Of a stretch of 64,000 bases of DNA, positions 21,770 through 64,000 are shown in pieces. A program made the translations under genes and the position numbers. The DNA comes from Gracilinanus agilis (Eukaryota). The stretch spans positions 422,999,208 through 423,063,207 of the forward strand of contig NC_058130.1 of the NCBI RefSeq assembly GCF_016433145.1, read 5' to 3'. The notes under the pieces were generated by a model. The model did not search any database. It was given only the letters and a program-made list of their open reading frames with translations, and had not been told where the DNA came from. Each line of letters begins with the position of its first letter. Position 1 is the first letter of the stretch.

Positions 21770-22653
21770 GCAAACAGATGGATGCTCCATTGCAATGAGT
21801 ATCTTGAACATCTCTCTCTGGAGACTAATTATTCTCCATCAGTGATCGAGTATTTAAAAAGCTATCATCAAGAAGCTACGAAAGTGTCTGCTGAAAACTT
21901 CCACAAAGTGAATGAGATGGTACTGGGCCTTGGTAGCAAGAAGGAGCAGAAACAATGGAATATTTTATGGCTGAAATGTCAGCAGACCAAGCATCATTTA
22001 GAAGAGGTCCTCTCTGAAGCCATCCGTGGTTCTGGCAGACAGTCTTTCAGCCAGGGTCCCCTCGAGTCTAGTCCAAAAGGAGAACGTGAGTTTGTCATTG
22101 ATGGTCTGAGGAAACATGCTCAGTCTCCTGGACTTCTTCTTACTAATCTTGACAGTAGCCTTTGGGAAAATAATGGACTGTTGTTCTCCCAGCGAGCTAG
22201 TTTCTCTGGAATACAGGCTCTTTCAGAGCAAGAGGGGCCAAGTTCAGGAATGTTTACTCCTCTTAGCACCTCGCCCTCACCAAGTCTTACTCCACTGTTG
22301 GGGGGGCTCCCCAGAACTGGTCCTCTCTTGGAGGACATGGATAACATCTCTACTTGCTACTCTGAACCCATCCAGTCCCCAACTACCCGCCATAGGAAAC
22401 ACCCCTTCAAGAAGATCATGAAGAAGACACAAAGCTTTGAACTTCCTCAGCTCGATAGCAGCCCCAGTGAGCTGCACCGGCACGGATACACTGGTGTTTA
22501 TATAAAAGGGCTGGAGGTGGCCAGTAATGTGGCCGCTGAGAAAAAACATGGACAAAGGCCAAACGTTAAGAGCCCTCTGGTCAGTAGGAACCGAAGCTTG
22601 TCATCCCCTTCCAGGATTCATCATACTGAGGAGGAAAGAAAGAGAGTAGGAAG
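21770..22653 (+). CDS. PLEKHG4B: Coding exon H (884 nt; end of spectrin-like region plus Ser/Pro-rich linker), ANRWMLHCNEY...HTEEERKRVG(S)
   Basis: ttcttttctggtaacacag|GCA...AG|gtgaga; phase 0-2; same frame as ORF 21782..22657; KKTQSFE and KGLEVxSxVAxEKK match the human protein. Confidence 0.95.
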
Positions 22654-23711: not shown

Positions 23712-23849
23712 NNNNNNNNNNNNNNNNNNNNNNNNNNNNNNNNNNNNNNNNNNNNNNNNNNNNNNNNNNNNNNNNNNNNNNNNNNNNNNNNNNNNNNNNN
23801 NNNNNNNNNNNNNNNNNNNNNNNNNNNNNNNNNNNNNNNNNNNNNNNNN
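23712..23849. other. Assembly gap (138 N)
   Basis: Run of N in intron H-I among L2-like fragments; exon H joins exon I in phase, so no obligatory exon is hidden. Confidence 0.99.
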
Positions 23850-40257: not shown

Positions 40258-40482
40258 AACAAGCAGCAAGACCTGGGCGATAAGATGGACTTGGCCTCCT
40301 ACCTGCTCAAACCCATCCAGAGGATGAGTAAATATGCCCTGCTGCTAAAGGACATGATCAAAGAATGCACCAAGACGCAGGAGCAGGAGCTCAGTGACCT
40401 CCGAGCTGCCGAGGAGATGGTCAAATTCCAGCTTCGCCACGGGAACGACTTGCTGGCCATGGATGCCATCCGGGGGTGTGAT
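40258..40482 (+). CDS. PLEKHG4B: Coding exon K, DH domain CR3, NKQQDLGDKMDLASYLLKPIQRMSKYALLLKD...HGNDLLAMDAIRGCD
   Basis: ctgaccctctcttag|AAC...GAT|gtaagg; 225 nt, phase 0-0; LLKPIQRxxKYxLLL and the catalytic Asn (GNDLL) are intact. Confidence 0.97.
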
Positions 40483-41400
40483 GTAAGGAAGTGATCTCCC
40501 TCTCTGGGCTTCCTTTGCAAAACTGACCATACCATGTGGGAAGTCAGTGGGAAGTCTCTCTCTCCTGCCCTTGATAAAGGGAGTCACCAAAAGTGTGCCA
40601 TCTGCTTAAGTATTCGTCCCTTTCCAAGCCTTGCAGAGAGGTGGCAAAGGAAGGAAGGAAATTACATCCGCCTATCTCCAACCAGAGTCATCCGCTCCAA
40701 TTTGCTACTTTGGGCTTTGAAGGGAAAGAACAGGGAGAGCGCGAGAGACATTCTAGAACTGGATTCTTTTTGGGTGTCTTTTAGAGGGCTACGGAGGTCC
40801 TTCTAGCACTCAAATTCTGTGATTCTGGGAGTTGTTGGGAGCTGCTCTATAAAGGGGGAGCATAGAATTAAGCAATAGCTACATAGATCACAGAATTTCT
40901 GACCTAGAAGGAACCTTGAAAGAACTTTTAGCCTAATCCCTTTATTTTACCAGTAGTGTCAGGAAGCCCCGAGGTCAAATCTAGCCTTAGACATTTACTA
41001 GTTGTATGACCTTGAGCAAGCCACTTAATCTCTATCTGCCTCAGTCTCCTGAACTGTAAAATGAGAATAATAGTAATACTAACTAAATTAATATTTAATG
41101 AATTATATATTGCTAGATTATTATAATGTTATATATAATAATAAATGAAATGAACTTTTATTAATATTATTTTATTCATTTTTATAGTTTATTATGGCAT
41201 AATATTTATATTATTGATGTTAGATGTTTATTGTTATACATAATCAAATTTAAAGATAAAAATGAATAAAATTAATTGATTTAATTAATTGATTTAAGTA
41301 ATAACACCTACTTTGCAAGATTGTTGTGAGGATCAAAAAAGATTATTTGTAAAGTGCTTAGCACAGTGTCTGGTACATAGTAGGTACTATGAATGCTAGC

Positions 41401-42846: not shown

Positions 42847-43017
42847 GTGAATTTAAAAGAACAAGGACAGCTGAGATGTCAGGATGAATTTATTGTTTGT
42901 TGTGGGAGGAAAAAATATCTGAGACATGTCTTCCTTTTTGAGGATCTTATCTTGTTTAGCAAGACCAAGAAGATTGATGGAGGATATGATATTTATATGT
43001 ACAAACAGTCATTCAAG
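42847..43017 (+). CDS. PLEKHG4B: Coding exon L, PH domain, [57 protein letters not shown]
   Basis: ctttctctctctag|GTG...AAG|gtaaaa; 171 nt, phase 0-0. Confidence 0.97.
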
Positions 43018-45449
43018 GTAAAAACAAACAAACCATTTGTTCTAAAGCATGGGCAAAATGCACTGATTTTTGCACAGAATATACAGTTTTTCGAATGTGT
43101 TGTAATTATTTCTAGATTAAAGGGAGCTCACAGCTTTCGTGTTGTTCTAACTTCATAAATTACATGAAATATAAACAAGGAAAGGGGAAAAAAAAGCACA
43201 AAAAATCAACTTCATGGAATGAAATGGAGAGCAACTTGATGGTATTTTTACACCTCACTGTGACATTCCATCATCCTCATTGCCTGATTTTTCCGAAAAG
43301 TTTAGACCACTGTGAACTCAGCTTTATTCCCCAAAGGTGTTAGTCATCCCTGGACCACTTGTATTTATTTATATGGGGCTCTGAGATGTCTTGCTGAATG
43401 GGACTCACTGGAAGCCAGATGTTTCCTGAGAAAATAATTCTATTTTGCATTTCTATTATGGTGACACAGGCTCATTGGGCAGTCAACAGCTGTCTGAATC
43501 ACGCCCCTCGGCACACTTGGCAGCACAGAAGCTCCCACTAGTTGCGCCAAACTAACTGCAAATCTCCAGTCCTATAAATGGGAACTTCTGACCACCTGCC
43601 TTCAATTAAGAACACACGCTAGGACACTAGATAGAGAACTAGTCTTAGAATCAGGAAAACTCAGTTTATTCTAACACATACTAGTTGCATGAATCTTCCC
43701 AAGTCACTTAACTTCTTAGGACTCTAGACAATTCTCTAAGACTATAAGTGGCAGAGAAAGTATGGACTGCTGTCTATATATTTTTTTAGTTAAAACATGA
43801 CATATTCACATATGCAGCAACTCTTCTCCAAGTTGGGATGTATTTATAGCAATTTAGGGCTTCAGAGAGTGCCAAGGCAAAGCCTCTTCTTTGAGTTTGC
43901 AAGAAATGTTGGATTTCAGGGTTTTTCCATCAGAGGACAGGGTAGTCTGAGATTAGCACTGTAATGGGAGCCAGCACTCCTGGGATCAGAATATCTCTAA
44001 GTGTTCATGACCCTGGGAAAGTGTTTCTCAGAAGCTTAATTAATTCAAAACAGTACTAACTCTCTAGGAATTTATTGTTGTTCAGTCATTTCAGTCACGT
44101 TATACTCTTCGTGACCTCATTTGGGGTTTTCTTGGCAAAGATACTGGAGTGGTTTGCTATTTCCTTCTCTAGCTCATTTTGCAGCCAAGGAAATTGAGGC
44201 AAACAGGGTTAAGTGACTTTCCCAGAATCACACAGTTAATATGTGTCTATTATTAGACACATATTAACTGACTCCACGTCACTGCACCACCTAGGAATTT
44301 CCCATCTAGTAAATACTAATGTAGTCGGAGTCCTGACTGATCTGAAATGGAAAGAAGGAGGAGGAAGACCAATCAATTGATAAGTATTTATTAAGTGCCA
44401 ACTATATGCCAAGCACTGGAATGGGGTAATTTCATCCCAATATCATGGTCACCTCAATCTAGGTTTCAGCTACCTCACCCTCTGTTCCTGTCTCTGCCAT
44501 TAACTGACTTTTGGTAAGACATGTCAATCCATCAAAAAGGATTTATTAAGTGTTTATTATATGCCAGGCACTGTGCCAAATGCTGAGGATACAAAGAAGA
44601 GCAAAAAATTGTATGTATGAAAAATGCAAAAATTGTACATTCAAAATATAAACGATAAAAATAGAAAATAATCTCATAGGGAAGGCACTAGCAGCAGAGT
44701 GCTAGAGTAAGGGTGGAGTGGAGCCTAGGAAAGACTTCTTGCAGAAGTGAGATTTGAGCTTGTTTTCAAACAAGTCAAAAGGCAGAGATGAAGAAGGAGA
44801 GTATTCCAGGCACCAAGAGATGCCACTGAAAACTCGTGGAGTTAGGAGATAGAGTATCTTGTGTGAGGAATAAGGGAGGAGACAAGTGCCACTTAGAGCA
44901 AGTGTCTTCTGTATATGTAAGGGAGTAAGGTGTGAAAAAAACTAGAAAAGTAGCACTAAGTTAGGTTGCAAAGGATTTTAAATGCCACCCAAGATTTTAC
45001 ATTTGCTCCTGAAGAAATAGGGAACCACTGGGGATAAGTGTGTGGTGTGGGTGTGAGTATGAGTGTGTCCTAAAGCTCAGAACTAAACTTTAGGAAAATC
45101 TCTTCATTATAATAGTTATCATATTTTTAAAAAGGGGCAAAGGTGTTCAGAATAATCTCTGCCCCCATCCAGCATGGATTAATGAATATGAATGAGGTTG
45201 ACTAGGGAGATGAAATTTATATTTATAAGTCATTTAAGAAAAATAACATTTCATATATATGTGAAGTGGCTGCAGCTCTCAGAAGCTACCATAGAAAATC
45301 AAGATTTACTTTGTAAAGCAAATTAATTCCCATGTTGACTTATTTGGGCCACCAGACTCTTAGCAGTGAAAACAATTTTACATTGATGTAGAAAATGCTC
45401 AGATGAAATTGAACATGCTGATTTTTCTGGCTCCTGGATATGATTTCAG

Positions 45450-45630
45450 ACTGCTGAAATTGGAATGACAGAAAATGTTGGAGACAGTGGTCTGAGGTTT
45501 GAGATCTGGTTCCGAAGGAGGCGGAAATCCCAAGACACATACATCCTTCAAGCAAGTTCTGCAGAAGTGAAAATTGCTTGGACAAATATCATAGGGAAAA
45601 TCCTATGGAGACAAGCTCTGAGGAACAGAG
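45450..45630 (+). CDS. PLEKHG4B: Coding exon M, PH domain, [60 protein letters not shown](E)
   Basis: gatatgatttcag|ACT...G|gtatat; 181 nt, phase 0-1. Confidence 0.96.
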
Positions 45631-45827
45631 GTATATAATATGAGGAAGTTATAAGCCAATAGCAGTGGCTCGTGATGGAGAATATCATTTTACATGAGAG
45701 TTTAATTTGATTGAGATGCAAGACAGGTCATATTCCATCTTGAGCATAAAGAATTCAGCCATGTAAATCAGGATAGCTATTCTGTAGAGCTATAAAGAGT
45801 GTCTTATGGGGGCAGCTAGATGCCTCC

Positions 45828-47951: not shown

Positions 47952-48221
47952 AGTCAAGATCTAGGGCATCTATAGCTGTGTCTTCATTTGACCACTCAAC
48001 ACCCTTTAAAAGGCCCCACTCTACCATCTCCAACAGCAGTACTTCTTCCTCAAGCAGCCAGTCTTCATCTTCAATTTTGGGGTCACTAAACCTGCATGTT
48101 TATTCTAGTCCATCTTATTCAGGACTGCTAAGCCCTCCCTTCTATCACTGGACTTATGACATTAAAACCTGTATTGAGGAAGATGAGCTAGAACAGGAAA
48201 CTGGAAGCCAACCATCGATGA
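47952..48221 (+). CDS. PLEKHG4B: Coding exon O, SRSRASIAVSSFDHSTPFKRPHSTISNSS...EEDELEQETGSQPSM(I)
   Basis: ctttatttctag|AG...A|gtgagt; 270 nt, phase 1-1; PFKRPHSTIS and ILGSLNL match the human paralogues. Confidence 0.93.
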
Positions 48222-48508
48222 GTGAGTGGATTTATACATGGTATTAAAGCAGGTTGAAATGAGGAGGGGAGGGCAGTTTTCTGATAAGGCCAGTTCAAGT
48301 GCTTGCATTCACTGAGAGGGAGATGATCTCAACTGGCTAGATCAGTGAGTTTTTATATGTTTTAAGGTATTTCTGATTATTGCAAGTGCTGCTATGAAAT
48401 TCTCAAAGCAAATTTTAAACTTTAATTTTAAAATATAAATATATACCACAGAGCATTTATAAGAAGCAAAGAGTCATGTTGAAAAGCCAATGAAAAGATA
48501 GCACAGAG

Positions 48509-48715
48509 GGCAGGTAGGTGGCTCAGTGGAGTTAAAGCCAGGCCTAGAGACAAGAGGTCCTAGGTTCAAATCTAGCGTCTGACACTTTCTAGCTATGTGA
48601 CCTTGGGCAAGTCACTTAACCCCTTTGTCTAGCCCTCACCACTCTTCTACCTAAGAACCAATACATAGTATTGATTCTAAGACTGAAGGTGAGAGTTAAA
48701 AAAAAAAAGAAAGAA
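48509..48715 (+). mobile_element. SINE1_Mdo-type SINE
   Basis: gggcaggtaggtggctcagtgg...A-tail. Confidence 0.85.
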
Positions 48716-49045
48716 AGAAAAGATAGCAAAACTCTTCTAATAAGTGATTTTTAAAGTATTTGACAAACACAAAGATCCAAAGAAAACTAAAAAGTTGGCA
48801 GTCATTACAATATCTCCTAGAAAAAATTAGCTGTTCTTACAGTATCTCCTAGTCACCAGTAGGGACTATGTGAATTGATGATGATGAAAAGGAAAATTAA
48901 TTTGCAGGGAATGTTATAATTAAGACTTTCCAATATCAAAAGAAATTAGACTTGAAATATGAGAGGCTGGGGCACTTATGTTCTGTAAATTAATAAACTG
49001 ATTAATGTTTGATTAAACTGCATTATTATTCCTCCCGGTCTGTAG

Positions 49046-49263
49046 TCACTGAGAGTTCTGAGTCATCACAGTGCACCTCTGGTGAGAGCATCAGCGGCTT
49101 TAGCAGCTCAGCCCACCCCGGGCTGTCCCAGCTTCTTCCCGACACATTTTCAGATGAAAGTGCTTCTAATCCTGGCTCCAAGCCTCCCTCCCAGTGTACA
49201 TCTCCAGCTCTCCCTGGGAAGAATTCCAGGTTGAAGCATGATAGTAATCAGTATATTACAACA
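49046..49263 (+). CDS. PLEKHG4B: Coding exon P, TESSESSQCTSGESISG...KHDSNQYITT
   Basis: ttcctcccggtctgtag|TC...ACA|gtaagt; 218 nt, phase 1-0; QPSM-ITESSESSQCTS resembles recalled PLEKHG4 QPSL-TAEDSEISSQCPS. Confidence 0.8.
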
Positions 49264-49980
49264 GTAAGTATTTGTTTTTAAATAAATTCATATTTTAAAT
49301 TCAATTCAGTTCAATTCAGCAACCTTTTAATAAAGACATACATACAATGCGTGAGCCACTGTGATCTGTGCTGGGAATTCAAAGATAAAAATGAAAAAAC
49401 TAGCCCTCCATGATTCCTTCCCCCAAGAGGCTTTTATTCTAAAAGGTGTAAATTCAAAATAATTTGGAAAGAGGGAGGAAGAGAGAGGAATTAGAATAAA
49501 AGAAACTGAGCCTGGGGCAACTGAGAATGAAACTGAGTTTTGATAGACCCTAGAAATGCTAAACAAATAAAAAATAAAAAATAAAAAGTAGAGATGAGGA
49601 GGGATTGCTGTACAGGCAAAGGAGATAACCTGAGCTAAGGCAAAGAGGCATTTAGGGAAATAAAAGGTTGATAGAATATTGAATTCTTGAAAGGGAGTTC
49701 AGAATCAGCCCAATTAATCCATGTAGCCTCCTTCAATTGCAGAGCTCTTCATGAGCTTATACTCTATCAGTGTAATATACTTCTAGCATTGAAACTGAGT
49801 GAGGCAGAATTAATTCTCTTTTAAATATCAGTGTTGTCATGTTAGCAAAGCAGATCCCATCCCTAACAATATCCACATGGAGTGCCATAGAGTTAGATAG
49901 GGAATGTAAGCTTTATAGAATAGTTTTAATTCTCCTAAGCCAACTCTAAATGTCTTCTATTATAAAACCTTTCATTGAAC

Positions 49981-50014
49981 ATTCATTCATTCATTCATTC
50001 ATTCATTCATTCAT
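49981..50014. repeat. (ATTC)n, the tail of an antisense L2 3' end
   Basis: attcattcattc... followed by atttaattaacaatgattaaatacttactatgtcc (L2 terminus). Confidence 0.85.
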
Positions 50015-51289
50015 TTAATTAACAATGATTAAATACTTACTATGTCCAAAATGTTAAACAAAGATAAACAAGGATATAAACCCCCTACTTTCATTGAGTT
50101 CACAATCTAATAGACATTGTAATCTCACTAGTCTCTGGACAGTTTTAGAAGATAAATGCCCATTCCACTTTTGGACATTTCTACTAAAGAGGAAATTGGC
50201 TAGTGGAATAGTATAGTTCATTGAGCCTCCACTGTATAAAAATCTTTCTGCTTCTGTTATAAGGTGTGTACCAGCAGGAGAGCAATTGGCAATAATGGCG
50301 GTCATGGCATGACTTTGGTCAGCTCTCCTCTTGTCAGTCAGCAGTAATTGAAGTGCTCATCTACTTAGCATAACATTTGTCTTTGTGGGAACCTTGTTGC
50401 TTGAGAGTCCAAAGTCACACCTTTTGATCCTGACAAGAGAGATTTAGACAAAGCACAAGTCCAAACGGGTCTTAAAACCAATATTAAAATTTGGATCTCT
50501 GCCTTAAAGGGGATGACAGTAAATGGTTTGGGTGAGGCAGCTTGTAAAACAGACCCATTAGAGGATCTCATGGAATCCCATAGTATTGGGTATCTTTATT
50601 TTTGAATTGTCCCTCCCAATTCAGAAAATCTAGGTAGATAAGAACACTGGGCCATTATCTCATTGAGTGCAGATTCCCTTCAAAAACTGAATTTCATTAA
50701 GATACTCCTAGGTCTATGAATGACCTTCTAGCCATCCCAAAGAAAGTCCTAGTCACTAGTATTAGATCAGAGAATTCATCTGAAATGTTGCTTCTAGGCA
50801 CATGTGTACAAATATACATTCAGAGCAAACATAATTTCAACTCAATTCAAGCATTTTTGAGCACTTAATATGTATTATATACAATGTGCTGTTCTAAGCC
50901 CTGAGAATGCACAAACTAAAATAAAACATTTTTTCGTTTTAAAGAAGTTAACCAGAGGGAAGCATTTACACAGCTAAGTTCATGGGAAACATATACAAAA
51001 GAATTTCAGAAGAAATTTCTCGAAGGGCCTTCCAGTTGATAGGCTGAGTTATTGTTGTCTATTCACAACTTATCAGTTAAGCACTAAGGGGAATCGGTGA
51101 GGAATAATCTTAAACTCATGATGTAAAAACTTGTTCTGATTTTACATTCAAAATTCCAGAATTTTGTCAGACCTCTCTAATGCTAATTTTAAAATCTTTT
51201 TATTCCATTCTGAGAGAGGGAAAAGTATCTTAAACAGTTCTGTCAAATGGGAGATCAAGAGATATGAACTGGTATTGTTGATCCTTTTT

Positions 51290-51480
51290 TTTTTTTTTCA
51301 ACCCTTATCTTCTATCTTAGAATAGATACTATGTATTGGTTCCGAGGCTAAGAAGAGAGGTAAGGGCTAGTGACTTGCTCTGGGTCACACAGCTAGGACT
51401 TGCCCAAGGCCAGATTTGAACCCAGGACCTCCCATTTCTGGACCTGGTTCTCTGTCCACTGAGCCACCTAGCTAACCCCA
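51290..51480 (-). mobile_element. SINE1_Mdo-type SINE
   Basis: T-tail, caacccttatcttc...ccactgagccacctagctaacccc. Confidence 0.85.
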
Positions 51481-52980
51481 TTTTTGATCCTGTAGCAATC
51501 TCCATCCTACATGAATCTGATCCCTTCAGGGCAGTATTGCCTCCAGCCCAACAGATCATAGCCCTTCTACCTCTTTATCATCTAATACTTATCTTTCCCT
51601 AAATCCCCTTGTAGCAGATCTCCCTATGTTCTGAGAACCACAAACAAGGTTAAATAAGTAGGCAGTCAGCAAAGAATGAGTATTAAAACTAAGCTCAATA
51701 TCTTAGATGACAATGATGCTCATAGAAAAGACAATTAGCAAATAAGCAATTCACTCATTCATCTAGGTTTTGTTAATTATCCACTGTAGGTAATAGTTGC
51801 TGTGAGAAATATAAAAGAAGTAATAGATTTTGGCCCTTCAACTGGAACTTATGCCGTAATTAGACTAAAAAGAAAAACATTAGTGATCACAACAGAACAC
51901 AAAGACTTTAAAAGAATACAGGACAATGAAAAAAGGGCTTAGCATTGCAAGACAGAATATCAGTCAATTAATCAGCAGTCATTTAGTATGGCCTACAGCT
52001 GTCTAGTCACTATGTTAGGCAAAGAGGATGCAAATACAAAAAATAATGCAAATTGAATAATAATAAAAAACCCCTCTTCTTAGGGAAGTTGCCTTCTATG
52101 GGTGAGAAAACATGCAAATTAATAAAGAATAAATGCAAAATAAGCACAAAGTCATTAAAGGTATGGTAGTTAGGGGAACCTAGGTGACAGTAAATTGAGT
52201 GCCAGGTCTGGATTTGGAAGGACCTGGGTTCAAATGTGACCTCAGATACTTAATAGATGTGTGACCTCAGGCTAGTCACTTAACCCCAACTGTCTCCCTA
52301 GCCTTTCTTTGTCTTTAGAGTTGTTACCAAGACAGAAAGGAAGAGTCTGGGATTTTATTTTAATGGAAGGTAATTAGGGAAGGAAGATCCTAGCAGTTGC
52401 ATCAAGTACAATATATACAAAGGTATATATTGAGGCATAGAAGTTAAGAAAGAAGACATGGAAAAATGGAAGCAGGGATGGATAAAAACACAAAGGGATG
52501 ACAAGTCTGGTTGGAGACATGGGGCTGCAATGAGAACTCATGAAAGAAGAGGGTATAGACATGGTGAGTCAGGGAAAAGAAAACATTTGGTGGCTTGGAA
52601 TGGTAGGCTAAAGGTCAATTCAGACTTAGGGCCTTTTCTTAGAAGATTAGCAAGAATTCTGGCTCAGTCCCCATCCTCTAACTCACAACAATGCATACTT
52701 CTTCTCCCACAGTCTTTTCCCACATCTCTCCCTAGTTCTAATAGCCAGGTAGCCGGGAGAATGAATTGATCTACAAGTCAGACAGTCAGTTAACAAGCAT
52801 TTAAGCACTTCTTATGTGCCAGGCACAAGGACCTATTTTAATGTTCATCTGAATCAAGAGGATGGTAATGATGGGTCTTGGAATAGTCAGCTGGCTCAGG
52901 GGAAGTTGTAAACCCCAAATTGTCTAGGATAAGCAATGACATTGGTTTTAATTAGTTGATTTCCCTCCCTTTTTTGTCAG

Positions 52981-53022
52981 AACAAAACTTCTCATGTATT
53001 AGGCTTCTCAACAGTGGTTTGA
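52981..53022 (+). CDS. PLEKHG4B: Candidate alternative C-terminal coding exon, NKTSHVLGFSTVV* (exon 52981-53042 if the donor at 53043 is used)
   Basis: Strong acceptor gatttccctcccttttttgtcag with branch-like TTAAT at 52948-52952; phase 0 fits exon P; ends in S-T-V-V-stop; ATTCA|gtaagt donor 20 nt after the stop. Confidence 0.5.
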   Translation, partial: NKTSHVLGFSTVV

Positions 53023-53456
53023 CTGGCAGGCAAAAACATTCAGTAAGTAACTGGTTTTTTCAGCTCAACACTGAAATAATCAAGTTAAATTGTTTAAAGG
53101 CGGGGGAGGTGTTCTGAGTTGCCACATCTGTGTCAAAGTTAACAATCAATTAAATTGGAGCATGCAGATGTTTCTCCAGGCTGATTTGCATGTCTAACCA
53201 TATTAAAAGAGCACGGGAAGCTTAATTGCACTGCCTGATATTAACAATCCTTCCTTCCTAAAGGGGGTTCTGCCGGAAAGGTAATGTAACGCTGCTCTCT
53301 GCTGCTTCTCCTTCACTGAATTTTCCCCTCTGTGTATCATGTGTCCAGCCACTTCTTGTCTAGGGGGATGGATTGCTCTCTAACAGAAAGGTGACTTTTA
53401 TAGCTGCCAAACTCTACCCACTCAGAGTGTGGCTGATATTCTTAGTTAGGAAATGC

Positions 53457-53462
53457 AATAAA
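53457..53462 (+). terminator. Possible proximal poly(A) signal
   Basis: AATAAA about 435 nt after the candidate stop at 53022; downstream element is weak. Confidence 0.25.
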
Positions 53463-53863
53463 GTATGGCAGTTCTAATCCCATCCCATTTATCATCAGCT
53501 TTACAGGCTGCCTATGACCAGGATGGATGACCAGAGACCCAAGCATAAGTTAACCCAACCCAAGATGTTTTAAAAAACAGAACAGCAAGCTCCATGACTT
53601 CTTTTGAGAATAAGTCAATACCATGCCTAGACAAGTTTCCTTTTGCCTGTGTCTGCCAAAACTTGTGACACAGTAGTTACATAGTGAGGGTTTGAGGGAA
53701 AGACATGACTTGAGTAACTTGCCTGGGATTAATAGACTGCTGGGAATTAAAGAATAGGGCAGTCATCTCTATTTTATTCACCTACCTACTGCTTTCTTTC
53801 CTCCTTTTGATTTTCACTCTTCCACTTGATACTCTTTCTTCCCTTTCCCCTACCCACCTAGAC

Positions 53864-54074
53864 CTGTGTTGGTGAACCTATGGCACACATGCCAGAGGGG
53901 CTGCTCCCTTCCCCCTCTCCATGCGCTGAGGACATTTCTCCCATCACCCACCCTTCTGCCCAGCAGCCCATGGGAGTGCTTCCTCCCTCCCCTGTCTGGG
54001 GTAAGGTCGGGGGCTTTCATGTACATGAGGGTTGCAGTTTGGCCACTGGGTCTCTGGAAGTTTCCCCATCACTG
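53864..54074. mobile_element. hAT-Charlie type MITE (family 1), 211 bp
   Basis: TIRs ctgtgttggtgaacct...aagtttccccatcactg; 8-bp TSD acctagac/acctagat. Confidence 0.8.
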
Positions 54075-55032
54075 ACCTAGATCATCCAGCCTTTTCAAGT
54101 AATGAGTTCCCAGCAACTGTTAAATTGTACAGTTTTCACAAGAGACTCTCAAATACTGGATGGAGAAGGTTGATAGGAAGAGATTGATGTGAAGCAGCGG
54201 GAGAGCCTGGTCTGTGCACTCCACTCAGGGATCCCCTAGTAAGATCATACATCCTGTTTCTCTAAATGGGAAGAGTTCCACATAGGAGGATTTGTACTGG
54301 CCAGTGCTGCCCAATTGAATCAAAGGCTAGAGCCCACAAATACTTCTGAGTTTTGAATAGATACAAACTGAAAGGACACCAAAGCAGAATGCTTAGCCCC
54401 TGCTGGAAGCTTAGTCCCAACTGTACCCTGAAGTATTCTGCATCTTTATCCATGAGGAATCTCTAAGTTTTGCTGGTAGTTACAGTCTTCAACTTGAGCC
54501 AGGTTAGTTTTTTAAAACATTTTCAGGATGTATTTGTATGTTAAAAAGCATCATGACCTACTACATGACCTAGGAAGTTGTTTAATCTCAAGCAACTTTT
54601 CAAGGCTGTAAATTGCAAAGCAGGTGGTGATCTGCACTGGTAGAATTCTCTCACAGCTAATTCTCTATACCAGGGCAGGTAGGGAGCACAGTGTATCGAA
54701 TGCTAGGCCTAAAGGCAAGGAGACTGATCTTCCTGAGTTCAAATCTGGCTTCTGACACTTCCTAGCTGTGTGACCCTGGGCAAGTCACTTCACCCTGTTT
54801 GCCTCCATTTCCTCATCTGTCAAATGAGTTGGAGAAGGAAATGGAAAATAATTCCAGTATCTTTGCCAAGAAAACCCCAAATGGGGACACAGGGTCAGAA
54901 CACAACTGAAAATGACTTAACAACAACAATAATTGTCTGTTCCAATGAAATTACAGATCTGGCCTCCACAAAAAACAAAACAAAACAAAACAAAAACAAT
55001 GAACTGAGTCCTGCCTTGCTCTTGATCTAGGG

Positions 55033-55244
55033 CAGTGATGGGCAAACTATGGCTCTTGGGCCAGATGTGGCCCCCTGAAATATTCCATCTGGCTGCACAC
55101 ATGCACGACATTATTCCTAATCTGACGAATACAATGAGTAGGATACAATACAATGAAACTTTGAAAGAGTTGCCTTAGAAACAGACTGACAGAAGAACAT
55201 TTCCTTTCCTTTGGCCCCCTCTTTAAGAAGTTTTTCCATCACTG
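55033..55244 (+). mobile_element. hAT-Charlie type MITE (family 2), 212 bp
   Basis: TIRs cagtgatgggcaaact...agtttttccatcactg; TSD atctaggg/gtctagag. Confidence 0.85.
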
Positions 55245-57145
55245 GTCTAGAGTATGCCCCCACTTAAAGAAAAGAACTCTTTGATTCATGAGGAGATCTC
55301 TAACAGTTGAAACGTTGGCTGGCCCATGCCCCTAGTTTCATACACACTGCTTTTCCTTATGCTTTTGTGACAAAATGCCCCCAAAGGACCAAACCAATTT
55401 ACCTAATACCTGATACATATGGGGATCATCAAGGTATCTTTTACAATTAATTTTTTCCAATATAAAAAATACTTCTACTATTTCTTTATCCTACCATATG
55501 AAAGGGCTAGCTTACCCTGCTGGTGCCCACCTGGCTAGGTGCTGGAGATATACAAATATATACTAGATGAAATACAGGTCCTTTTTTAATGGAGCTTATA
55601 CTCTAGTCATAGGTTAGAAAACACAGAAAGGATATCATAATATCTGAGATGCAAAGCTGAGAAGTGGAAGTCAAATGTGATGTCTCTGTGATATCTGAGG
55701 GGAGAATGCCATTACCAAGAAATTAAAAGAAAAGAGAGAGTCATAAAATTTGGTGCTGAAAGATATTATCAGAGATGTCTCCAAATGCCTCATTTTGGAG
55801 ATGAGACTGATGCCCAAAGTCACTCATGTTGTAAGTAGGAGAGCCTCTTGATTCTGAATCCCATGCTTTTTCCTACTGATCATGCTGACTATGCCATAAA
55901 AGTAAGGAAAGGAGCCATTGCCCTCCCAAAAGATGAGTACAAATAAGTCCCAGTTAGTGAAAATAATGGATTCCCCAAGTATTAGTTTAATTTGGACTAC
56001 CCATTTCCATCAGGCCAGAAGAATTAGCTTATTTTACATAGAATTCTAAATAGTGTGAATTCAATTTCAAATAAATAGTGAATTCAAAAATTCACTCATT
56101 GGAAACTGGCTATGTCTACATGGATTGGTAGCCAGAGTAGTTTGCATGGCTTAGTCAAGGTCTTCACCATTGTTATGGTATGTAAGAAAAGAAAATTCAT
56201 GGAAAGTTATGGTGCTTAAACTATTCTAAGGTTGATCAGTGACAATAAACTTATTGTATTTAAAAAAAAGCTGGACAAATATCCATTCAAACAACAATTT
56301 ATATTAAATAAAGACTCACTTCCCACTAATCATACTGTTAAATGAGCAGAGCTTCTGTCATAATTAGGGAATTTATTCACCTATGTTTAGAAAAAAATAA
56401 ACCCAAACCCAGTGAATTGAAACACTAAAAGTAAAATGTAAAAGATTTCATCTCACCTCTGATACTTACCTATGTATTTGATGCTGGGCAAATTATTATC
56501 TCTCTGGACCTCAGTTTCCTCATTTATAAAAGGAGGGATTTGGATTAGATGGTCCCTTGACATCTCTTCCATTCTGAATTTATGATCATAAGAGTAATGT
56601 GATCTAATACCATGGGAAGCCAGATGAGGCCATCACTGCTGCCACTGCTGCTGCTGGCCTTGGGGTTGTTTCAGGCTGATCTGTGACAATGTCCCACAGG
56701 GAAGCAGTTCCTGTAAACATGCTTATTAATAGATTTATCCTGTCATTCTAGGGTCAGAATCACAAACATAGAAGCACATCTTATGCAATGACTATTTTGC
56801 CCACAGAAACTTGTCTTTGAGGTTGGCCTGTCACTTTATGCCTGGAGCCCTGAGGCATGCAGACTTCATTGAGATCCACCTCGAATGTTATGGGTGAACC
56901 TATACCCAGTGAAGGAGGAAGAAAAAAACCTATACAAACTCAAGCGTTCAAGGAGGGGACCTTCTAAGCCAGTTCATGTAAACAGGATCTGAAGAGAGAA
57001 TCCCCTCTTCTACAATTAATCTTTAAGGACCTTCAGTGATGGGGAAATCACAACCTCCCTGAGGACATCCACTGCAATTTTGAGCAACTCTCTAAAGAGA
57101 TTTTTCTTACATTGGGCTGAAATCATCCTCTCTATAGTATCCATT

Positions 57146-58630
57146 AGCGTTTAAGGTTAAGGCCTTGAGCAAAATCTTTTAGGCATCAAATGAGAAAAAG
57201 AAGGCAGGAGTGGCTATTGTGATTTCTGACAAAGCCAAAGTAAAAATAGATATGATTAAAAAAGACAGGGAAGGTCATTACATCCTGATTAAAGGCAGTA
57301 TAAGCAATGAGGAAATAACACTGCTCAATATGTATGCACCAAGTGGCATAGCATCCAAATTCATAAAGGATAAACTGGCAGAGCTCAAGAAGGAAATAGA
57401 TAGTAAGACCATAATAGTGGGAGATCTAAATATTCCTCTTTCAGATCTAGATAAATCAAACCAAAAAAAAAAAAATAAGAAAGAGGTAAGAGATGAATGA
57501 AATCCTAGAAAAATTAGATTTAATTGATATTTGGAGAAAAATAAATAGGGACAAAAAGGAATACACCTTCTTTTCAGCTGCACATGGTACATTCACAAAG
57601 ATTGACCATGTAATAGGGCATAGAAACATTGCAAACAAATGCAAAAGAGCAGAAATAATAAATGTAACCTCAGATCATAATGCAATAAAAATAACAATTA
57701 GTAAGGGCATCTGGACAGGCAAATCAAAAACTAATTGGAAATTAAATAATATGATTCTCCAAAACCAATTAGTCAAAGAAGAAATCAGAAACAATCAACA
57801 ATTTCATTGAAGAGAATGACAATGATGAGACATCCTACCAAACACTGTGGGATGCAGATAAGGCAGTACTCAGGGGGAAATTTATATCCTTGAGGGCATA
57901 TATTAACAAATTAGGGAGTGCAGAGATTAATTAATTGGGCATGCAACTCAAAAAATTAGAAAGCGAGCAAATTAAAAATCCCCAGATGAAAACTAAATTA
58001 GAAATACTAAAAACCAAGGGAGAAATTAATAAAATCGAAAGTAAAAGAACTATTGAATTAATAAATAAGACTAGAAGCTGGCATTTTGAAAAAACAGATA
58101 AAATAGACAAAGTACTGGTCAATCTAATAAAAAAAGGAAAGAAGAAAACCAAATTGACAGTATCAAAGATGAAAAGGGAGACCTCACCTCTAATGAAGGG
58201 GAAATTAAGGCAATCATTAAAAACTATTTTGCCCAATTATATGGCAATAAATATAACAATCTAGGAGATATGGATGAATATTTACAAAAATACAAATTGC
58301 CTAGATTAACAGCAGAAGAAATAGAATACCTAAATAATCCCATATTAGAAAAAGAAATTGAACAAGCCATCAAAGAACTCCCTAAGAAAAAATCGCCAGG
58401 GCCTGATGGATTCACAAGTGAATTCTATCAGACATTCAAAGAGCAACTAATCCCAATTCTATACAAATTATTTGATATGATAAGCAAAGAAGGAGTACTA
58501 CCAAATTCCTTTTATGACACAAATATGGAACTGATTCCAAAGCCAGGTAGATCAAAAACAGAGAAAGAAAACTACAGACCAATCTCCCTAATGAACATAG
58601 ATGCAAAAATCTTAAATAGAATACTGGCAA
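57146..58630 (+). mobile_element. L1 ORF2 internal fragment (endonuclease to start of RT), truncated at both ends, frameshifted
   Basis: ORFs 57210-57500, 57493-57810, 57935-58264, 58270-58665: [59 protein letters not shown]; no 3'UTR or poly(A). Confidence 0.95.
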
Positions 58631-58715
58631 GTCATTTTACTGGCCCTCAGTTTCTTCATCTGTAAATTGAGGAAATTGGGCTAGATGATTTCTAAAGTCC
58701 CTTCTAGCTATAAAG
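58626..58715 (+). mobile_element. 3' half of a MIR fused directly to the L1 fragment
   Basis: ggcaagtcattttactggccctcagtttcttcatctgtaaa...ctagatgatttctaaagtcccttctagct. Confidence 0.8.
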
Positions 58716-59887
58716 CTTTGAAATGATGATCATGTTTTCCATGGGTTTTCTCTTTTCAAGGCTAAATATCTCTAGTTCCTACACCTGATCCTTGTGAAGC
58801 ATGTAGTTGTCCTTCCATTGTCCTTGTTGCTCTCCTCCACATGTCCTTCAGCTGATCAGTATCCTCTCCAAGAGGTGGCACCTTAAGGTGATAATACCAT
58901 TCCAAGCATATAGTGGACTAGACTGTCGGATAATTTGTTGTTGTTCAGTTGTTTCAGTCATGTCTGACTCTTCTTGATCCCAATTGAGGTTTTCTTGGCA
59001 GAGATTCTGAAGTGGTTTGCTGCTTCCTTCTCCAGCTCTTTTAACAGATGAGGAAACTGGGGCAAAGAGGGTGAAGTGACTTGCCCAGGAAGTATCCAAG
59101 GCTAGCTTTGAACTCACTTTAATCCAAGCATTCTGTCCATTGTGGCCCCTAGCTGCCACCATAGAATAATAATCTCCGTCATTCTGGACCCTAGTCTCCT
59201 GTTAGCCTAAACTCATAGTTCTTTTTTGTCTGCCATGTCACATTATTGATTCATACTGAGTGCCTGGTCCACTCAAACCTATAAATCCTTTCCTTCTAAA
59301 CTGCTGTCTAGCTGTATATCCCAAATCCAAAGCCTGCCAGCTTCAAAAGTAAAACTTCATATTCAATTTCATCGTATTAGCTTTGACCCATAGTTATGAC
59401 CCGTTGAAATCTCTTTGGGTCTCAATTGTGTCTCTCTGTGAGTTAGCTCACTCTTCCATCTATTTTCAGATTATCTGTAAAGCTGAAAAGGATGCTGCCT
59501 TCGTTGAAAGCACTGAATAAACTGTTAAAAAGAATAGGTCTACAAAAAGGATCCTGTGATGTTTCCCTACAGACTCCACTCATTGATCTAAATTCATTAA
59601 TCACCACTCTTTGAGACTAATTGTACAAGTAGTTAAAAATTCATCTTACTGAGCCATCATCTAGCCCATATCTCTCCATCTCATTCACAAGAATATTATG
59701 TGAGATTGTGTGTCAGATACCTCACTGAAATTCAGTAAATGTTCCATATGACATTCCTCTTACAGTATGCTGGAGCCAGCTACTTACAAGAGCTGATTGT
59801 TAAATTTTCACACGAGTATTTACACCTCAGAAACTGGCAAATATAATCAATCGGGGATTGACTTCTTGTTTTGTGAATTATCTAGAC

Positions 59888-60091
59888 TAGTGATGGGCAA
59901 ACTTTTTAAAGAAGGGGCCAAAGGAAAGGAAATGCTCCTCTGTCAGTCTGTTTCTAAGGCAACTCTTTCAAAGTTTCATTGAATTGTATCCTCCTCGTTG
60001 TATTTGTCAGATTAGGAATAATGTTGTATGGCTGAATAGAACATTTCAGGGGTCTGCATCTGGCCCGCAGGCCGTAGTTTGCCCATTACTA
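59888..60091 (-). mobile_element. hAT-Charlie type MITE (family 2), 204 bp, inverted relative to the 55033 copy
   Basis: TIRs tagtgatgggcaaact...agtttgcccattacta; TSD atctagac/gtctagac; reverse complement aligns along the 55033-55244 copy. Confidence 0.85.
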
Positions 60092-61039
60092 GTCTAGACA
60101 TAAGGAAGTGATAGGAGAAAAGTTAATAATACAGATTAACCCTAAATGTGTATCATGCATACATTTTTCCCAGAGAGCCAGTTGTTAAAGATTCATTAGC
60201 ATGCCCCAGCATTCTCATGATCTATCTAACCAAAGTTTTAAATTCAGGTCTTCCTGATTCCAAGGCTAGCACTTTGTCTGTTAGAGCAGCTAGGTTCTAC
60301 AAGGAGCTTTCCTCTTTGGCTCTGATTATACATTCAGAGAACCCCTGGATTTCAGAGCTGGAAGGGACCTTGATGAGCATCTTCTGCTTGCCATATTTCA
60401 GGATAATGATGCCTTTTAAGTAGATGCCAAGTTACAAAGCCATTCATGCAATTTTTTCACTCGCTAGCTGTCATTGAGAAAAACCACCTGTTCATTAAGT
60501 GTACAGATCTTCTCCTGGGCCATCTGACCAGCTTCCCCACATCTTCACACTCTTCTCAATTCTGTCCTCACTGAATTTCCTCAGCTTTTGACTTTAGGCT
60601 TCCCTTCTCATCCCTACCAAACTTCTCCCTGTATCCTTGCCCTATTCTGTGACCTTAGCTGGGAGAGAAATTGAGAGGGAGAGGTGTATGGTCCTGCAAA
60701 TAGTGATATTGGGGAGAGTGCACTCTGACTTCCTGGAGGGGGCTGCTGCAGGCTTGGAGACCATGGGTAAGGCATGTTTGCACTGCATGGTTGGGTAGCT
60801 ATTTTTCTTTGGCAGCATCATAATATGATGTCAAGACCCTGCTTTGTTCTGGGGGCTTGCTCTCTAAATGGCTTTGGATTCTCTTCTCAAAATGATTTAA
60901 TGTTCTGCCTGTTATCTAGAGGTTATAGGGAATGGAGGAGAGAAGGTGGAGGTGATCAGTCACTAGTGAGTTTCTACAATATTGAAGTCTCCCCAAAAGC
61001 AAGTAACCATTATATTAACAACAGTCACTGTTTTGACAG

Positions 61040-61045
61040 CTGTGA
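61040..61045 (+). CDS. PLEKHG4B: Candidate terminal exon start, adding L* (C-terminus ...QYITTL)
   Basis: Branch TTAAC at 61015-61019 and cactgttttgacag|CTG TGA; phase 0 fits exon P; followed by about 1.5 kb of repeat-free UTR-like sequence. Confidence 0.4.
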   Translation: M

Positions 61046-62525
61046 TTGATCTGACCTTGATGACATTTTCCATGCAACAACCATCTCGGAGCTCTTCTGA
61101 CCCGGACACGAGAATGTACAGCTCAAGAAGAAACTACCTGCGTGTCTGCTAATACATGTCAGGAAGAAAAGGATCAAGGCAAGGCCACAAATGATGAGCC
61201 AACAATTCCCACATTACAAGGACCAGTAGAGCTGCTGTGCCCTAGGAGTCACCTCTTCTTTGATGTTCACTCCACCTTATATCTGTGCATCATTTCAACC
61301 TAGATCAACCATCATTTTTACTCCCTGATGTTGCTCCGACATGTCAGGAAGACGACTAATGAGCCTTTATACTTAATCTCACCCTCAGACTGACCAAATG
61401 TGGACTTGCCACCCAAAGAAAATCGACCAGCCTTTCAGAATAGAAGCAAAGGGACCTGAGTAGAGCTGAAAAATCACTAGGGAAACAGAAGCATTTCTTT
61501 CTTGAAAAGATTAAGGGCATATAATTCACCCTTCAGGATTGCATGGGGCAAAAGCACTGCAAAACACAAAAATCACCACTTGGTCCCAGCTGGGGATGCT
61601 TTTGTCCCTGCAGCATCCATTTCCTAGCCCTTCTGCTTCTTTCAAATAAAGATGGGCTTAGGTTTTGGCAACAGACTTTTACATTTTGTTTTTAAAATGG
61701 TTTTGTTAGTAGTGTATCTAACTTGCAGCCAAACCACGGGCTAAATTCTGACTGAAGGAGTGGGTACCTAAAGTGTGCTTGCCATTGACTTAAGGGAGCA
61801 GAAATTAGCCCTAATTATGTATGTCTGTGCATATGTCTGTATGCCTCTCTGGGTGAGTGTTAAGAACTTTAAACCTTTTCTTTCTTTTCTAGCCAGTTGT
61901 ATGTAAATAGTGTAGGAGGTATGTTAGTAATTGCAGTCAACTCTTGATTGTCCACACCAGGCTAAGGAGGCCAAGTGGTTCAGATGTTTGAAGACCACCA
62001 GTACTCCATAAAGCCAGGCCAACGTGATGGGCCCCTTCCCTTGGCCAGTTTTCCTGCTAAGCCAAACTTCCAGTGCTATGCTTCCAACAGTTCATACCTG
62101 GAGAATCCCAAGTTGACTCTACTTGGTATTGTGCAATCCTGTCAAAGTAGGCAACCTGTAAGGAGTGAGCTGACCTCTGAACAAAAGCGAAAAAATGTGC
62201 AACCAGCTGGAAGCTTTTGTAAATAGTACTCTGGGGCCTCACTTTGAAAATCTCATAACTAGGAGAAGGTCTTGTCTTTTAAACATAGTAGCATCTTTAG
62301 CAAGGGTCCACAGAGGCAACGTGTATAGATAAAAATATATGGACCATTTTAGAAAACGATAATGATTTTAGTCATGGTTTTTAAAAAGTATTTTCAACCA
62401 CTTTTTCAGAGATTGAATATTTCATTATCTGTCAACTGTTGATAACAATTTACTTTTGTTATTTTGTTTCAATACAAGCTTGTTTAATACTTAAAAATAA
62501 ATAAATGGAACATTTTTCAACTGTT
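61046..62525 (+). other. PLEKHG4B: Candidate 3'UTR
   Basis: No recognisable transposon over about 1.5-2 kb in a repeat-dense locus; two TGTAAATA Pumilio elements (61902, 62218); U-rich distal part; tandem AATAAA. Confidence 0.5.
62496..62505 (+). terminator. Polyadenylation signal (overlapping AATAAA x2)
   Basis: AATAAATAAA at 62496-62505, U-rich upstream, CA at about 62518 and U/GU-rich sequence downstream; further AATAAA at 61645 and 62688. Confidence 0.55.
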
Positions 62526-64000
62526 TCACATTTCTTCACTGGTGCAAATGGAAATTACTTTCACCAGGACCTGTGTATATTAAAGAGTGAGCATGCTTTC
62601 TAGTTTCGTTTCTACTCATGAATTTATTGCACCTGACTTATATTTTCCCACAGAAAGAAATTTAGCAAAATGAATCTGTGAACTTGAAATAAACCAAGGC
62701 ACAAAACCCAAACATTAGGATGACTGATGGCTGACTTGCCCTGAACAATCTCTTCTTCATATTCCCTGGTTCTGGTTTAGATAACCCACATATGACGTAG
62801 GGGCAACAATTTCAGGGCCAGCTTCCCAAAGCGATGATTTTTTCTTTTTAAATCCTACCATGTGAATATCAGATATAAATATCTTCTAAAAAAAAAAAAC
62901 CTTCTTTGCCAGCTTGATGACCCTGCCAGTTATGAGTTTCTTCTTTTGACTTGGCGGTTTCTGTTCCCTTGTTATGATACAAATGCCCCTAGAGGAAATA
63001 ATTCATTAAGTCTTATGAGTCATTTATACTTAAATATGAAGTTTATCAGTCTGAGAATGGGTTTTCATAAGTGAGAATACAGAATAGAACATGAGAATAT
63101 TAAGTCCCTGAAGTGGGACAGCAACTCCACAAGGCAGAGGAAAGGGGCTCAAAAAAGTAGAGGAAGAAGAGAGAGTTCTTTCAATTTTACAGTCTTGTCT
63201 AGAGTTGGCCATGTCTAAGATCAGTTGATGGCATTTTGCCACTCCCTTTTAGTCTTTGCTCTCTCTATTTTAGTCTTAGTCTTAATCTTAGTCTTTGCTC
63301 TCTCTATTTTCTCTCTCCTTCCCTTCTATTCTCTTTCTTTTTCCTCTTCACCTTTCCTACAGAAGAAGAGGGGCAGGTAGATGGCTCAATGGATAGAGCA
63401 CTGGACTTGGAGTCAGGAAGACGTGTGTTCCAATTTCAAATTTTATCTCAGATACTTATTAACTAATTGTGTGACACTGGGGAATTTATTTAACCTCTGT
63501 TTGCCTTAATCCACTGGAGAAGAAAATGGCAAACCATACCAGTATCTTTGCCAAGAAAATTCTATGGACAGTATGTTCCATGGAGTGTTATGGATAAAAA
63601 GGGAGGTACACTAAGTTGGGGGTAATCTCCTTCCCTTGCTGAGTGATGGAGGGGTAAAAGGTGATTGAGGTAATAGGAGAGGAATGAAAGAGATGGCTGA
63701 GTTTAGGGAGGAATGGACAAGGCGATATTAGGATGGTAAGGGTACAGGGTGAGGTGTTCAGTAGAGGCAGCTGACACAGACTAGACACCCAGGCTAGAGA
63801 CAGAGGATACTGGGGTAATAGGCTGAACCCTTCCAGGCAGGAAAGGTACTTTTACAGACACAAGGAATAGGGTCAGTCAGAAGTGGTTTGAATCTGACTT
63901 GAGGGCTTTCTTGTCAGTTTCTCAAGTCCTCAAAGGAGGAATCACAAGGCTCCTCCCTGTCAGTGAAATTGAAGGGATTCAGGAGGAAGCATTGGGCAAC

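Follow-up and report, generated by a model that had tools for sequence, protein, structure and literature searches.

A probable ancient alternative penultimate exon that may switch the C-terminal tail of the RhoGEF PLEKHG4B in Gracilinanus agilis

A group of RhoGEFs is known to be targeted by way of C-terminal PDZ-binding motifs (PMC4594598). In the case of Syx1 and Syx2 (PLEKHG5), alternative splicing decides the PDZ-binding C-terminus and hence the site of GTPase activation (PMC4594598). The likeness to PLEKHG4B is that of a PLEKHG-family RhoGEF with a PDZ-type C-terminus set by splicing; however, Syx is the product of another gene and acts on RhoA rather than on Cdc42, and Syx2 is two residues shorter and does not arise by cassette skipping. 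Moreover, binding to MUPP1/Patj and to synectin is proven for Syx1, whereas the PLEKHG4B tail is a candidate ligand. Kalirin, a RhoGEF with Sec14 and spectrin repeats, is grouped together with PLEKHG4B in the TRIO subfamily by one survey (PMC5499878), and the PDZ-binding end of one isoform, Kalirin-7, holds that protein at a specialised membrane site (PMC9823006). Here the likeness lies in an isoform-specific C-terminal PDZ-binding motif within a RhoGEF. The Kalirin-7 motif is -STYV, which is close to -STVV, and Kalirin-7 owes this end to an alternative 3' terminal exon, by which a far longer protein is cut short, whereas in PLEKHG4B a short cassette would alter just the last 1-13 residues.

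PLEKHG4B is a Cdc42-specific Dbl-family RhoGEF. Its junctional targeting has so far been explained by annexin A2 binding (PMC10881155), and the literature searched contained no report of a PDZ partner or C-terminal motif for this protein, and no published description of a tail switch. The isoform pair is already in the databases as RefSeq predicted models, including those of Monodelphis domestica. The models from this species (X2/X3) and from Sarcophilus harrisii (X1-X4) show the same gene with the same exon logic, with ends ...QYITTNKTSHVLGFST[VM]V and ...QYITTL. These models are automatic and come from other species, whereas the present analysis places the exons in the G. agilis genome and documents their orthology, their conserved flanks and the spacing from stop to donor.

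The window, that is the whole 64,000-nucleotide stretch of G. agilis DNA that was analysed, contains a gene that, judged by its domains and by protein similarity, is a PLEKHG4B orthologue. The order DH then PH is present, with a Pfam RhoGEF match at 40258-40491 (E 7e-11) and SOS1_NGEF_PH matches at 42847-43020 and 45444-45635. When the window was compared by tblastn with marsupial PLEKHG4B proteins, 16 segments covered Monodelphis X2 residues ~675-1777, with an identity of 94.6% in the largest exon (294 aa) and of 100% in the DH and PH exons. Together, the Pfam domains and this exon-by-exon match back the initial annotation of the RhoGEF as PLEKHG4B. The PLEKHG4B genes of marsupial, turtle and dugong range from 113 to 198 kb. 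A PRAME-family gene (PRAME_C or PRAME_N match) lies ~2-8 kb downstream of PLEKHG4B in devil, turtle, dugong, emu, sturgeon and lizard; the position corresponding to this PRAME/LRRC14B-like neighbour falls past base 64000 of the window.

Table 1. Coordinates of the 3' features of the PLEKHG4B orthologue in the window (a slash marks an exon boundary).
Feature	Position	Strand	Description
Exon O	47952-48221	+	Phase 1 at both ends; encodes ...SILGSLNLHVYSSP...EEDELEQETGSQPSM; splice sites read directly
Exon P, last exon common to both isoforms	49046-49263	+	Acceptor ctgtag/TC, donor ACA/GTAAGT
Upstream conserved intron flank	52942-52980	+	TTTTAATT-like element, pyrimidine tract, acceptor; aligns with sturgeon, skink and tarpon
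Alternative 62-nt cassette exon	52981-53042	+	Acceptor ttttttgtcag/AAC, donor TCA/GTAAGT; read directly
Downstream conserved intron flank	53043-53068	+	GTAAGTAA.TGG.TTTTTTCAGCT; skink alignment reaches 53068
Terminal exon start	61029-61075	+	Acceptor tgttttgacag/ ends at 61039; CTG TGA (L, stop) at 61040-61045; conserved 3'UTR after

Exon O is 95.8% identical to the marsupial PLEKHG4B proteins by tblastn. UniRef models of several marsupials and turtles, probably derived from Ensembl, end in an exon O read-through without exon P or either tail, and the intron between exons O and P carries a SINE that includes 48578-48628. Exon P, which matches Monodelphis X3 at 100% identity over 65 aa, was read directly, which confirmed the donor first proposed for it; there the exon closes on ...NQYITT in phase 0. 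Its orthologues in lizard, sturgeon, emu, skink and tarpon end ...QY[IV]T[AT]/GTAAGT or GTGAGT, and the NQY[IV]T[AT] stretch before the junction is a conservation peak. A word search with the exon P frame returned only a 78-aa lizard fragment, which led on to these orthologues; a DNA comparison of lizard with the window gave no match.

Downstream of exon P, the proposed 62-nt exon with its own GTAAGT donor was borne out both by direct reading and by orthologous cassettes. Its coding part (52981-53019) comprises 13 codons for NKTSHVLGFSTVV, followed by a TGA stop (53020-53022) and by 20 untranslated nucleotides (53023-53042) between stop and donor. An STVV-like exon was indeed found in other marsupials and vertebrates, the cassette peptide being identical to the annotated PLEKHG4B C-terminus in five marsupial models (Monodelphis X3, Macrotis, Petaurus, Notamacropus and Trichosurus). 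At the DNA level, the sturgeon, tarpon and skink cassettes each gave one unique blastn match, all within 52942-53068 (E 3e-10, 3e-12 and 7e-21, respectively). The skink match spans 52960-53068 and the sturgeon match begins at 52942, thus covering the intron flanks, and within 7.4 kb of skink sequence this span is the sole significant match to the window. In the alignment the GTAAGTA at the cassette donor is invariant in four species. Conservation at the DNA level extends to the synonymous sites of the last six cassette codons and to 15-20 nt past the stop. A consensus RNA fold computed for the cassette region had an energy of -9.7 kcal/mol and showed no covariation, and no structure is claimed.

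The terminal exon was identified in the same manner. The annotated terminal exon of emu (ttgttttgacag/CTC TGA) has one unique blastn match in the window, at the terminal exon start (E 3.7e-6), and the exon start together with its acceptor can be aligned among three species. The terminal Leu codon is CTG, CTC or CTA depending on the species, so that variation is at the synonymous position alone. The initial annotation had read the splice to the 61039 acceptor as giving ...QYITT-L and a stop, a reading that direct inspection and the emu exon match both uphold. Hexamers of the polyadenylation signal occur downstream, at 61645 and 62496-62688. The alternative acceptors for exon P at 52713, 60816 and 61893 were rejected, since the resulting tails match no annotated isoform.

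The question arises whether such exons could occur by chance. Splice sites were scored with a crude matrix that discriminates poorly, since it gives the true exon P acceptor only 2.0, and on this scale there are 14 acceptor/donor pairs of similar strength within 49.3-64 kb and 62 acceptors scoring at least as high as the acceptor at 61040. Downstream AG/Leu-stop sites number 8, against ~5 expected. With ~14 pseudo-exons of similar crude score and these 8 sites, sequence alone would not reveal the switch, and the lack of any score that singles out the cassette would fit a chance pseudo-exon in a long intron. However, the matter is settled by orthology, namely the peptide shared with the annotated marsupial C-termini and the unique DNA matches of both the cassette and the terminal exon, so that the pseudo-exon explanation is already refuted and carries a negligible probability. 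The same comparisons confirm that both the 62-base exon and the distant acceptor are real, and match them to alternative splicing present in sharks through to marsupials.

Two kinds of end are seen among the RefSeq predicted isoforms of Monodelphis, Sarcophilus and Notamacropus, namely ...QYITTNKTSHVLGF-ST[VM]V and ...QYITTL. Within single species, pairs of cassette and skip forms occur in the marsupials Monodelphis (X3/X2), Sarcophilus (X1,2,4/X3) and Notamacropus (X2/X3), as well as in Chelonia, Carettochelys, Alligator mississippiensis, Chiloscyllium, Hemiscyllium, Stegostoma and Acipenser; all RefSeq X-isoforms are predicted models. Among fetched proteins of at least 900 aa, which came from searches and a cluster look-up and include many isoforms per species, at least 103 have cassette-type ends (STVV 50, STMV 34, STLV 11 and STIV 6, together 101/103 of those classified) and 62 have skip-type ends (TAL 57, TTL 4 and TDL 1). 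Among placentals the dugong was informative, its PLEKHG4B ending in -STVV. One Leu codon followed by the stop is retained in sharks, sturgeon, bichir, lungfish, frog, turtles, alligator, ratites and marsupials. Skipping is also seen at the RNA level: Logan contigs yield five full-length proteins with the end ...KFITAL, and direct reading of a teleost RNA contig of 5318 nt with an unbroken ORF shows exon P (...ACA GCG) joined straight to CTG TGA. The initial proposal of two C-termini, produced by inclusion or skipping of the cassette, is thus supported by predicted isoforms annotated within single species across jawed vertebrates.

Both forms are presumably used in G. agilis as well. A search of sequencing runs found no run registered as RNA that contains the exons; three small runs, possibly RNA, match about half of the query words. 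It is conceivable that this species makes one form only, the cassette being either constitutive or no longer functional, with gene prediction having carried over the second isoform. Some lineages have indeed fixed a single form: all emu isoforms are of the skip type, with a doubtful cassette relic, and the cassette of Podarcis has decayed. However, the window keeps intact splice sites and an intact reading frame for each form, both models are present in three other marsupials and the skip junction is present in teleost RNA, which together make a single form here highly improbable.

The position of the cassette stop bears on the fate of the longer message. A stop codon less than ~50-55 nt upstream of the last exon junction escapes nonsense-mediated decay. 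After cassette inclusion the mRNA would splice on to the terminal exon as 3'UTR, and the distance from stop to donor is 20 nt in the window, 19 in sturgeon, 18 in tarpon and 15 in skink. Since the last junction lies well inside this limit, the cassette form should not trigger decay; the initial annotation had made this argument from the window, and the spacing of 15-20 nt in all four species read agrees with it.

Taken together, these data suggest that 52981-53042 is the marsupial version of a penultimate PLEKHG4B exon that is alternative and of ancient origin, and that its inclusion or skipping adds or removes an -STVV tail and so likely changes which PDZ scaffolds, if any, are bound. We give this reading a probability of roughly 0.7. 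With the cassette included, the protein would end ...QYITT-NKTSHVLGFSTVV, a C-terminus of the class I -S-T-x-V PDZ-ligand type that appears nearly invariant from sharks to mammals; with the cassette skipped, exon P would join 61040 and the protein would end ...QYITT-L. Both tails would have a free C-terminus, the TGA following directly after ...STVV and after ...TTL (stop at 61043-61045). The most likely effect of the switch would be to alter the set of PDZ scaffolds, should there be any, that keep the GEF at membranes or junctions. Factors that regulate the cassette probably bind the conserved intron sequence at either side of it. Regulation of the cassette and PDZ binding of the tails are inferred, as are the tissue control and the exchange of scaffold partners put forward in the initial annotation.

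The initial annotation regarded both ends as class I PDZ ligands, and both do fit [S/T]-x-hydrophobic-COOH in the window; this does not extend to several squamates, whose skip tails (-QNP in -DDLVQNP, -QNI in -ADLAQNI, -DNS and -GNI) are not class I and stem from an altered start of the terminal exon. If both tails were working ligands with different partners, splicing would exchange one scaffold for another. The -T-[ATD]-L pattern, the retention of the single Leu codon and stop from sharks to marsupials with synonymous change alone, and the conservation peak at the preceding NQY[IV]T[AT] are all consistent with such an exchange. However, the squamate tails depart from the pattern, and the donor site, together with an internal role of these residues in the cassette form, could instead explain why ...ITA/ is conserved. 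The exchange between two working ligands is thus possible but doubtful. As squamates have replaced -TTL, this tail may not itself be a ligand, and an on/off switch of one ligand is no less likely than an exchange of two. A broader proposal is that PLEKHG4B has had two functional PDZ-ligand tails, -STxV and -TxL, each excluding the other, since before sharks split from bony vertebrates, and that a regulated cassette with equally old flanks chooses between them, tail choice setting, beyond annexin A2, whether the GEF sits at the junction or at another membrane domain; this we consider rather unlikely.

It should also be asked whether the conserved cassette tail serves PDZ binding at all. The conserved synonymous sites and post-stop bases indicate that the RNA, and not the peptide alone, is constrained, and by a rough estimate ~3-4% of random C-termini would fit the class I pattern. 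The tail could then act through another C-terminal module, through phosphorylation-dependent binding of the S-T residues or through regulation at the RNA level, its PDZ-like pattern being incidental. Against this, -S-T-x-V is found with only V, M, L or I at position -1 in >100 fetched proteins while the tail upstream of it varies, which is the signature of a C-terminal ligand, and the same device is known in related GEFs. A role unrelated to PDZ domains is accordingly improbable, and a PDZ-ligand-type tail that can be spliced in or out is the reading that we prefer.

Overall, PLEKHG4B is a little-studied Cdc42 GEF at epithelial cell-cell junctions, and its targeting has so far been put down to annexin A2 and partner GEFs. 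A spliceable and nearly invariant -S-T-x-V tail would provide a testable handle on its placement, both through the PDZ scaffolds concerned and through the tissues that make each form. The ancient cassette, with its flanks and its stop-to-donor spacing, would also illustrate cleanly how an alternative exon can close the reading frame and yet be exempt from nonsense-mediated decay.

Pfam matches to RhoGEF and SOS1/NGEF-type PH domains identify the gene in the window as a Dbl-family RhoGEF. Its exons match marsupial PLEKHG4B proteins one by one over residues of about 675-1777, which bears out the name given in the initial annotation; in protein comparison Monodelphis comes closest, ahead of bilby and devil, and the largest exon (21770-22651 region) shares 94.6% identity with the Monodelphis domestica RefSeq protein. 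The sequence is thus marsupial, with Monodelphis the nearest of the species compared, although it does not match those models exactly. UniRef models from Monodelphis, Sarcophilus, Vombatus and several turtles terminate instead in read-through of the exon O donor (...SQPSMSEW...; window 48222-48247). These models, which lack exon P and both tails, probably derive from Ensembl and look like an annotation error.

The last common exon (exon P), the 62-nt cassette exon and the terminal-exon acceptor were all found, by direct reading, where the initial annotation had placed them. When splice sites 3' of exon P were scored with a crude matrix, 14 acceptor/donor pairs were similar in strength and 62 acceptors scored at least as high as that at 61040. 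The 14.7 kb also contains 8 AG|Leu-stop sites, where about 5 are expected. The window sequence by itself does not show the cassette and the 61040 acceptor to be more than chance, and the choice of these sites required outside evidence.

Features in the window, with related squamate places
Feature	Position	Strand	Remark
Assembly gap	23712-23849		138 N, within a PLEKHG4B intron
tRNA-like marsupial SINE copies	48507-48720, 52188-52287, 54672-54796, 63370-63417		
Exon P	49046-49263	+	phase 0 at its 3' end; last residues ...NQYITT; donor ACA|GTAAGT; direct reading
Cassette exon, 62 nt	52981-53042	+	long pyrimidine tract upstream; encodes NKTSHVLGFSTVV; direct reading
Cassette stop	53020-53022		followed by 20 nt, then donor TCA|GTAAGT; direct reading
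Inverted repeat, 147 nt	55105-55251, 59881-60027		92% complementary; flanks the LINE-like frames
LINE-like reverse-transcriptase and endonuclease frames	57183-58662		intron between cassette and terminal exon
Terminal-exon acceptor	ends 61039	+	followed by CTG TGA; direct reading
Squamate cassette-relic and terminal-exon places	L001:1716-1760, L001:2934-2957; L004:106524-106625		L001, Podarcis lilfordi DNA; L004, skink DNA

Word searching on the reading frame of exon P led to a lizard fragment, and a profile built from this fragment and exon P was run against all representative proteins, yielding full-length orthologues. Region-restricted searches and cluster look-up then extended the collection to >200 PLEKHG4B proteins. 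Two C-termini recur among them: in one, ...QY[IV]T[AT] leads into a tail of 12-14 residues that closes with S-T-[VMLI]-V, and the other is ...QY[IV]T[ATD]-L. Annotated models with either end occur side by side in individual species of marsupials (Monodelphis X3 and X2; Sarcophilus X1, X2 and X4 with X3; Notamacropus X2 and X3), reptiles (Chelonia, Carettochelys, Alligator mississippiensis) and fishes (three cartilaginous carpet sharks and the ray-finned sturgeon), in agreement with the proposal of alternative ends made by cassette inclusion or skipping. The window cassette peptide is identical to the marsupial tail in five species and differs by one residue from that of Sarcophilus (STMV). The S-T-x-V end is nearly invariant; the remainder of the tail drifts.

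Genomic DNA of sturgeon, emu, skink and tarpon was compared with the window. Within the 14.7 kb 3' of exon P, the sturgeon, tarpon and skink cassettes each gave one unique blastn match, on 52942-53068 (E 3e-10, 3e-12 and 7e-21, respectively), with alignments extending 20-40 nt into the upstream and 26 nt into the downstream intron; in 7.4 kb of skink sequence the cassette region was the sole significant window match. The emu terminal exon (ttgttttgacag|CTC TGA) gave one unique match, at 61029-61075 (E 3.7e-6), which pins the L* acceptor to 61040 and not to one of the seven remaining AG|Leu-stop sites. The leucine codon (CTG in the window and tarpon, CTC in emu, CTA in sturgeon) varies at its synonymous position alone.

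By the established rule, a stop less than 50-55 nt upstream of the last junction spares an mRNA from nonsense-mediated decay. The cassette stop-to-donor distance is 20 nt in the window, 19 in sturgeon, 18 in tarpon and 15 in skink, far below this limit, and the initial argument for escape from decay holds in all four species. Across the cassette donor, YCAGT could pair with the ACTGR just after the stop (53020-53047); both segments are invariant in the four species, but they would form a stem of just 5 pairs, in which no covariation was found. Further downstream, the 147-nt inverted repeat could loop out 4.6 kb of pre-mRNA.

Five full-length proteins from RNA-seq contigs (Logan) end in ...KFITAL. 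Because one 5318-nt contig, with an unbroken 1696-codon frame, joins ...ACA GCG directly to CTG TGA (direct reading), cassette skipping is seen at the RNA level, in a teleost at least.

Some lineages have changed or lost a tail. Every emu PLEKHG4B model ends in -TAL, and the cassette may have been lost in ratites; a weak cassette-like stretch in emu DNA (L003:69938-69973; NKTKYILH*FTV, E 0.24), about 670 nt 3' of exon P, has no AG acceptor. Podarcis lilfordi carries a frame-broken cassette relic (IKTSHLSPWF...), and skink has an intact cassette and a homologous terminal exon (83% identity). The squamate terminal exon begins GATGATT in place of CTNTGATT, so that the old TGA is read through to a -DDLVQNP end. 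The -TTL tail is itself a candidate PDZ ligand, and the one-codon -TxL tail is kept from sharks to marsupials; however, several squamates have replaced it, via the altered terminal-exon start, by -QNP, -QNI, -DNS or -GNI.

The isoform pair is already in databases as automatic RefSeq models, including those of Monodelphis domestica, and the bare observation is therefore not new to them. The literature searched describes PLEKHG4B in terms of Cdc42 specificity, a complex with ARHGEF11/12 and annexin-A2-dependent junctional localisation; it makes no mention of a C-terminal motif or isoform pair, and no earlier description was found of the switch's great age, its conserved flanks and spacing or its PDZ-ligand reading.

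Inclusion of the cassette would give PLEKHG4B a free -S-T-x-V end, the textbook class I PDZ-ligand pattern, and skipping would give a -T-x-L end. Mechanisms of this kind are known. One group of RhoGEFs is targeted by means of C-terminal PDZ-binding motifs, and alternative splicing sets whether Syx (PLEKHG5) carries the motif (PMC4594598); Kalirin-7 is likewise an isoform with a PDZ-binding end (PMC9823006). Given these precedents and the near invariance of the class I pattern, the tail switch most likely alters the predicted binding of this junctional GEF for Cdc42 to PDZ scaffolds.
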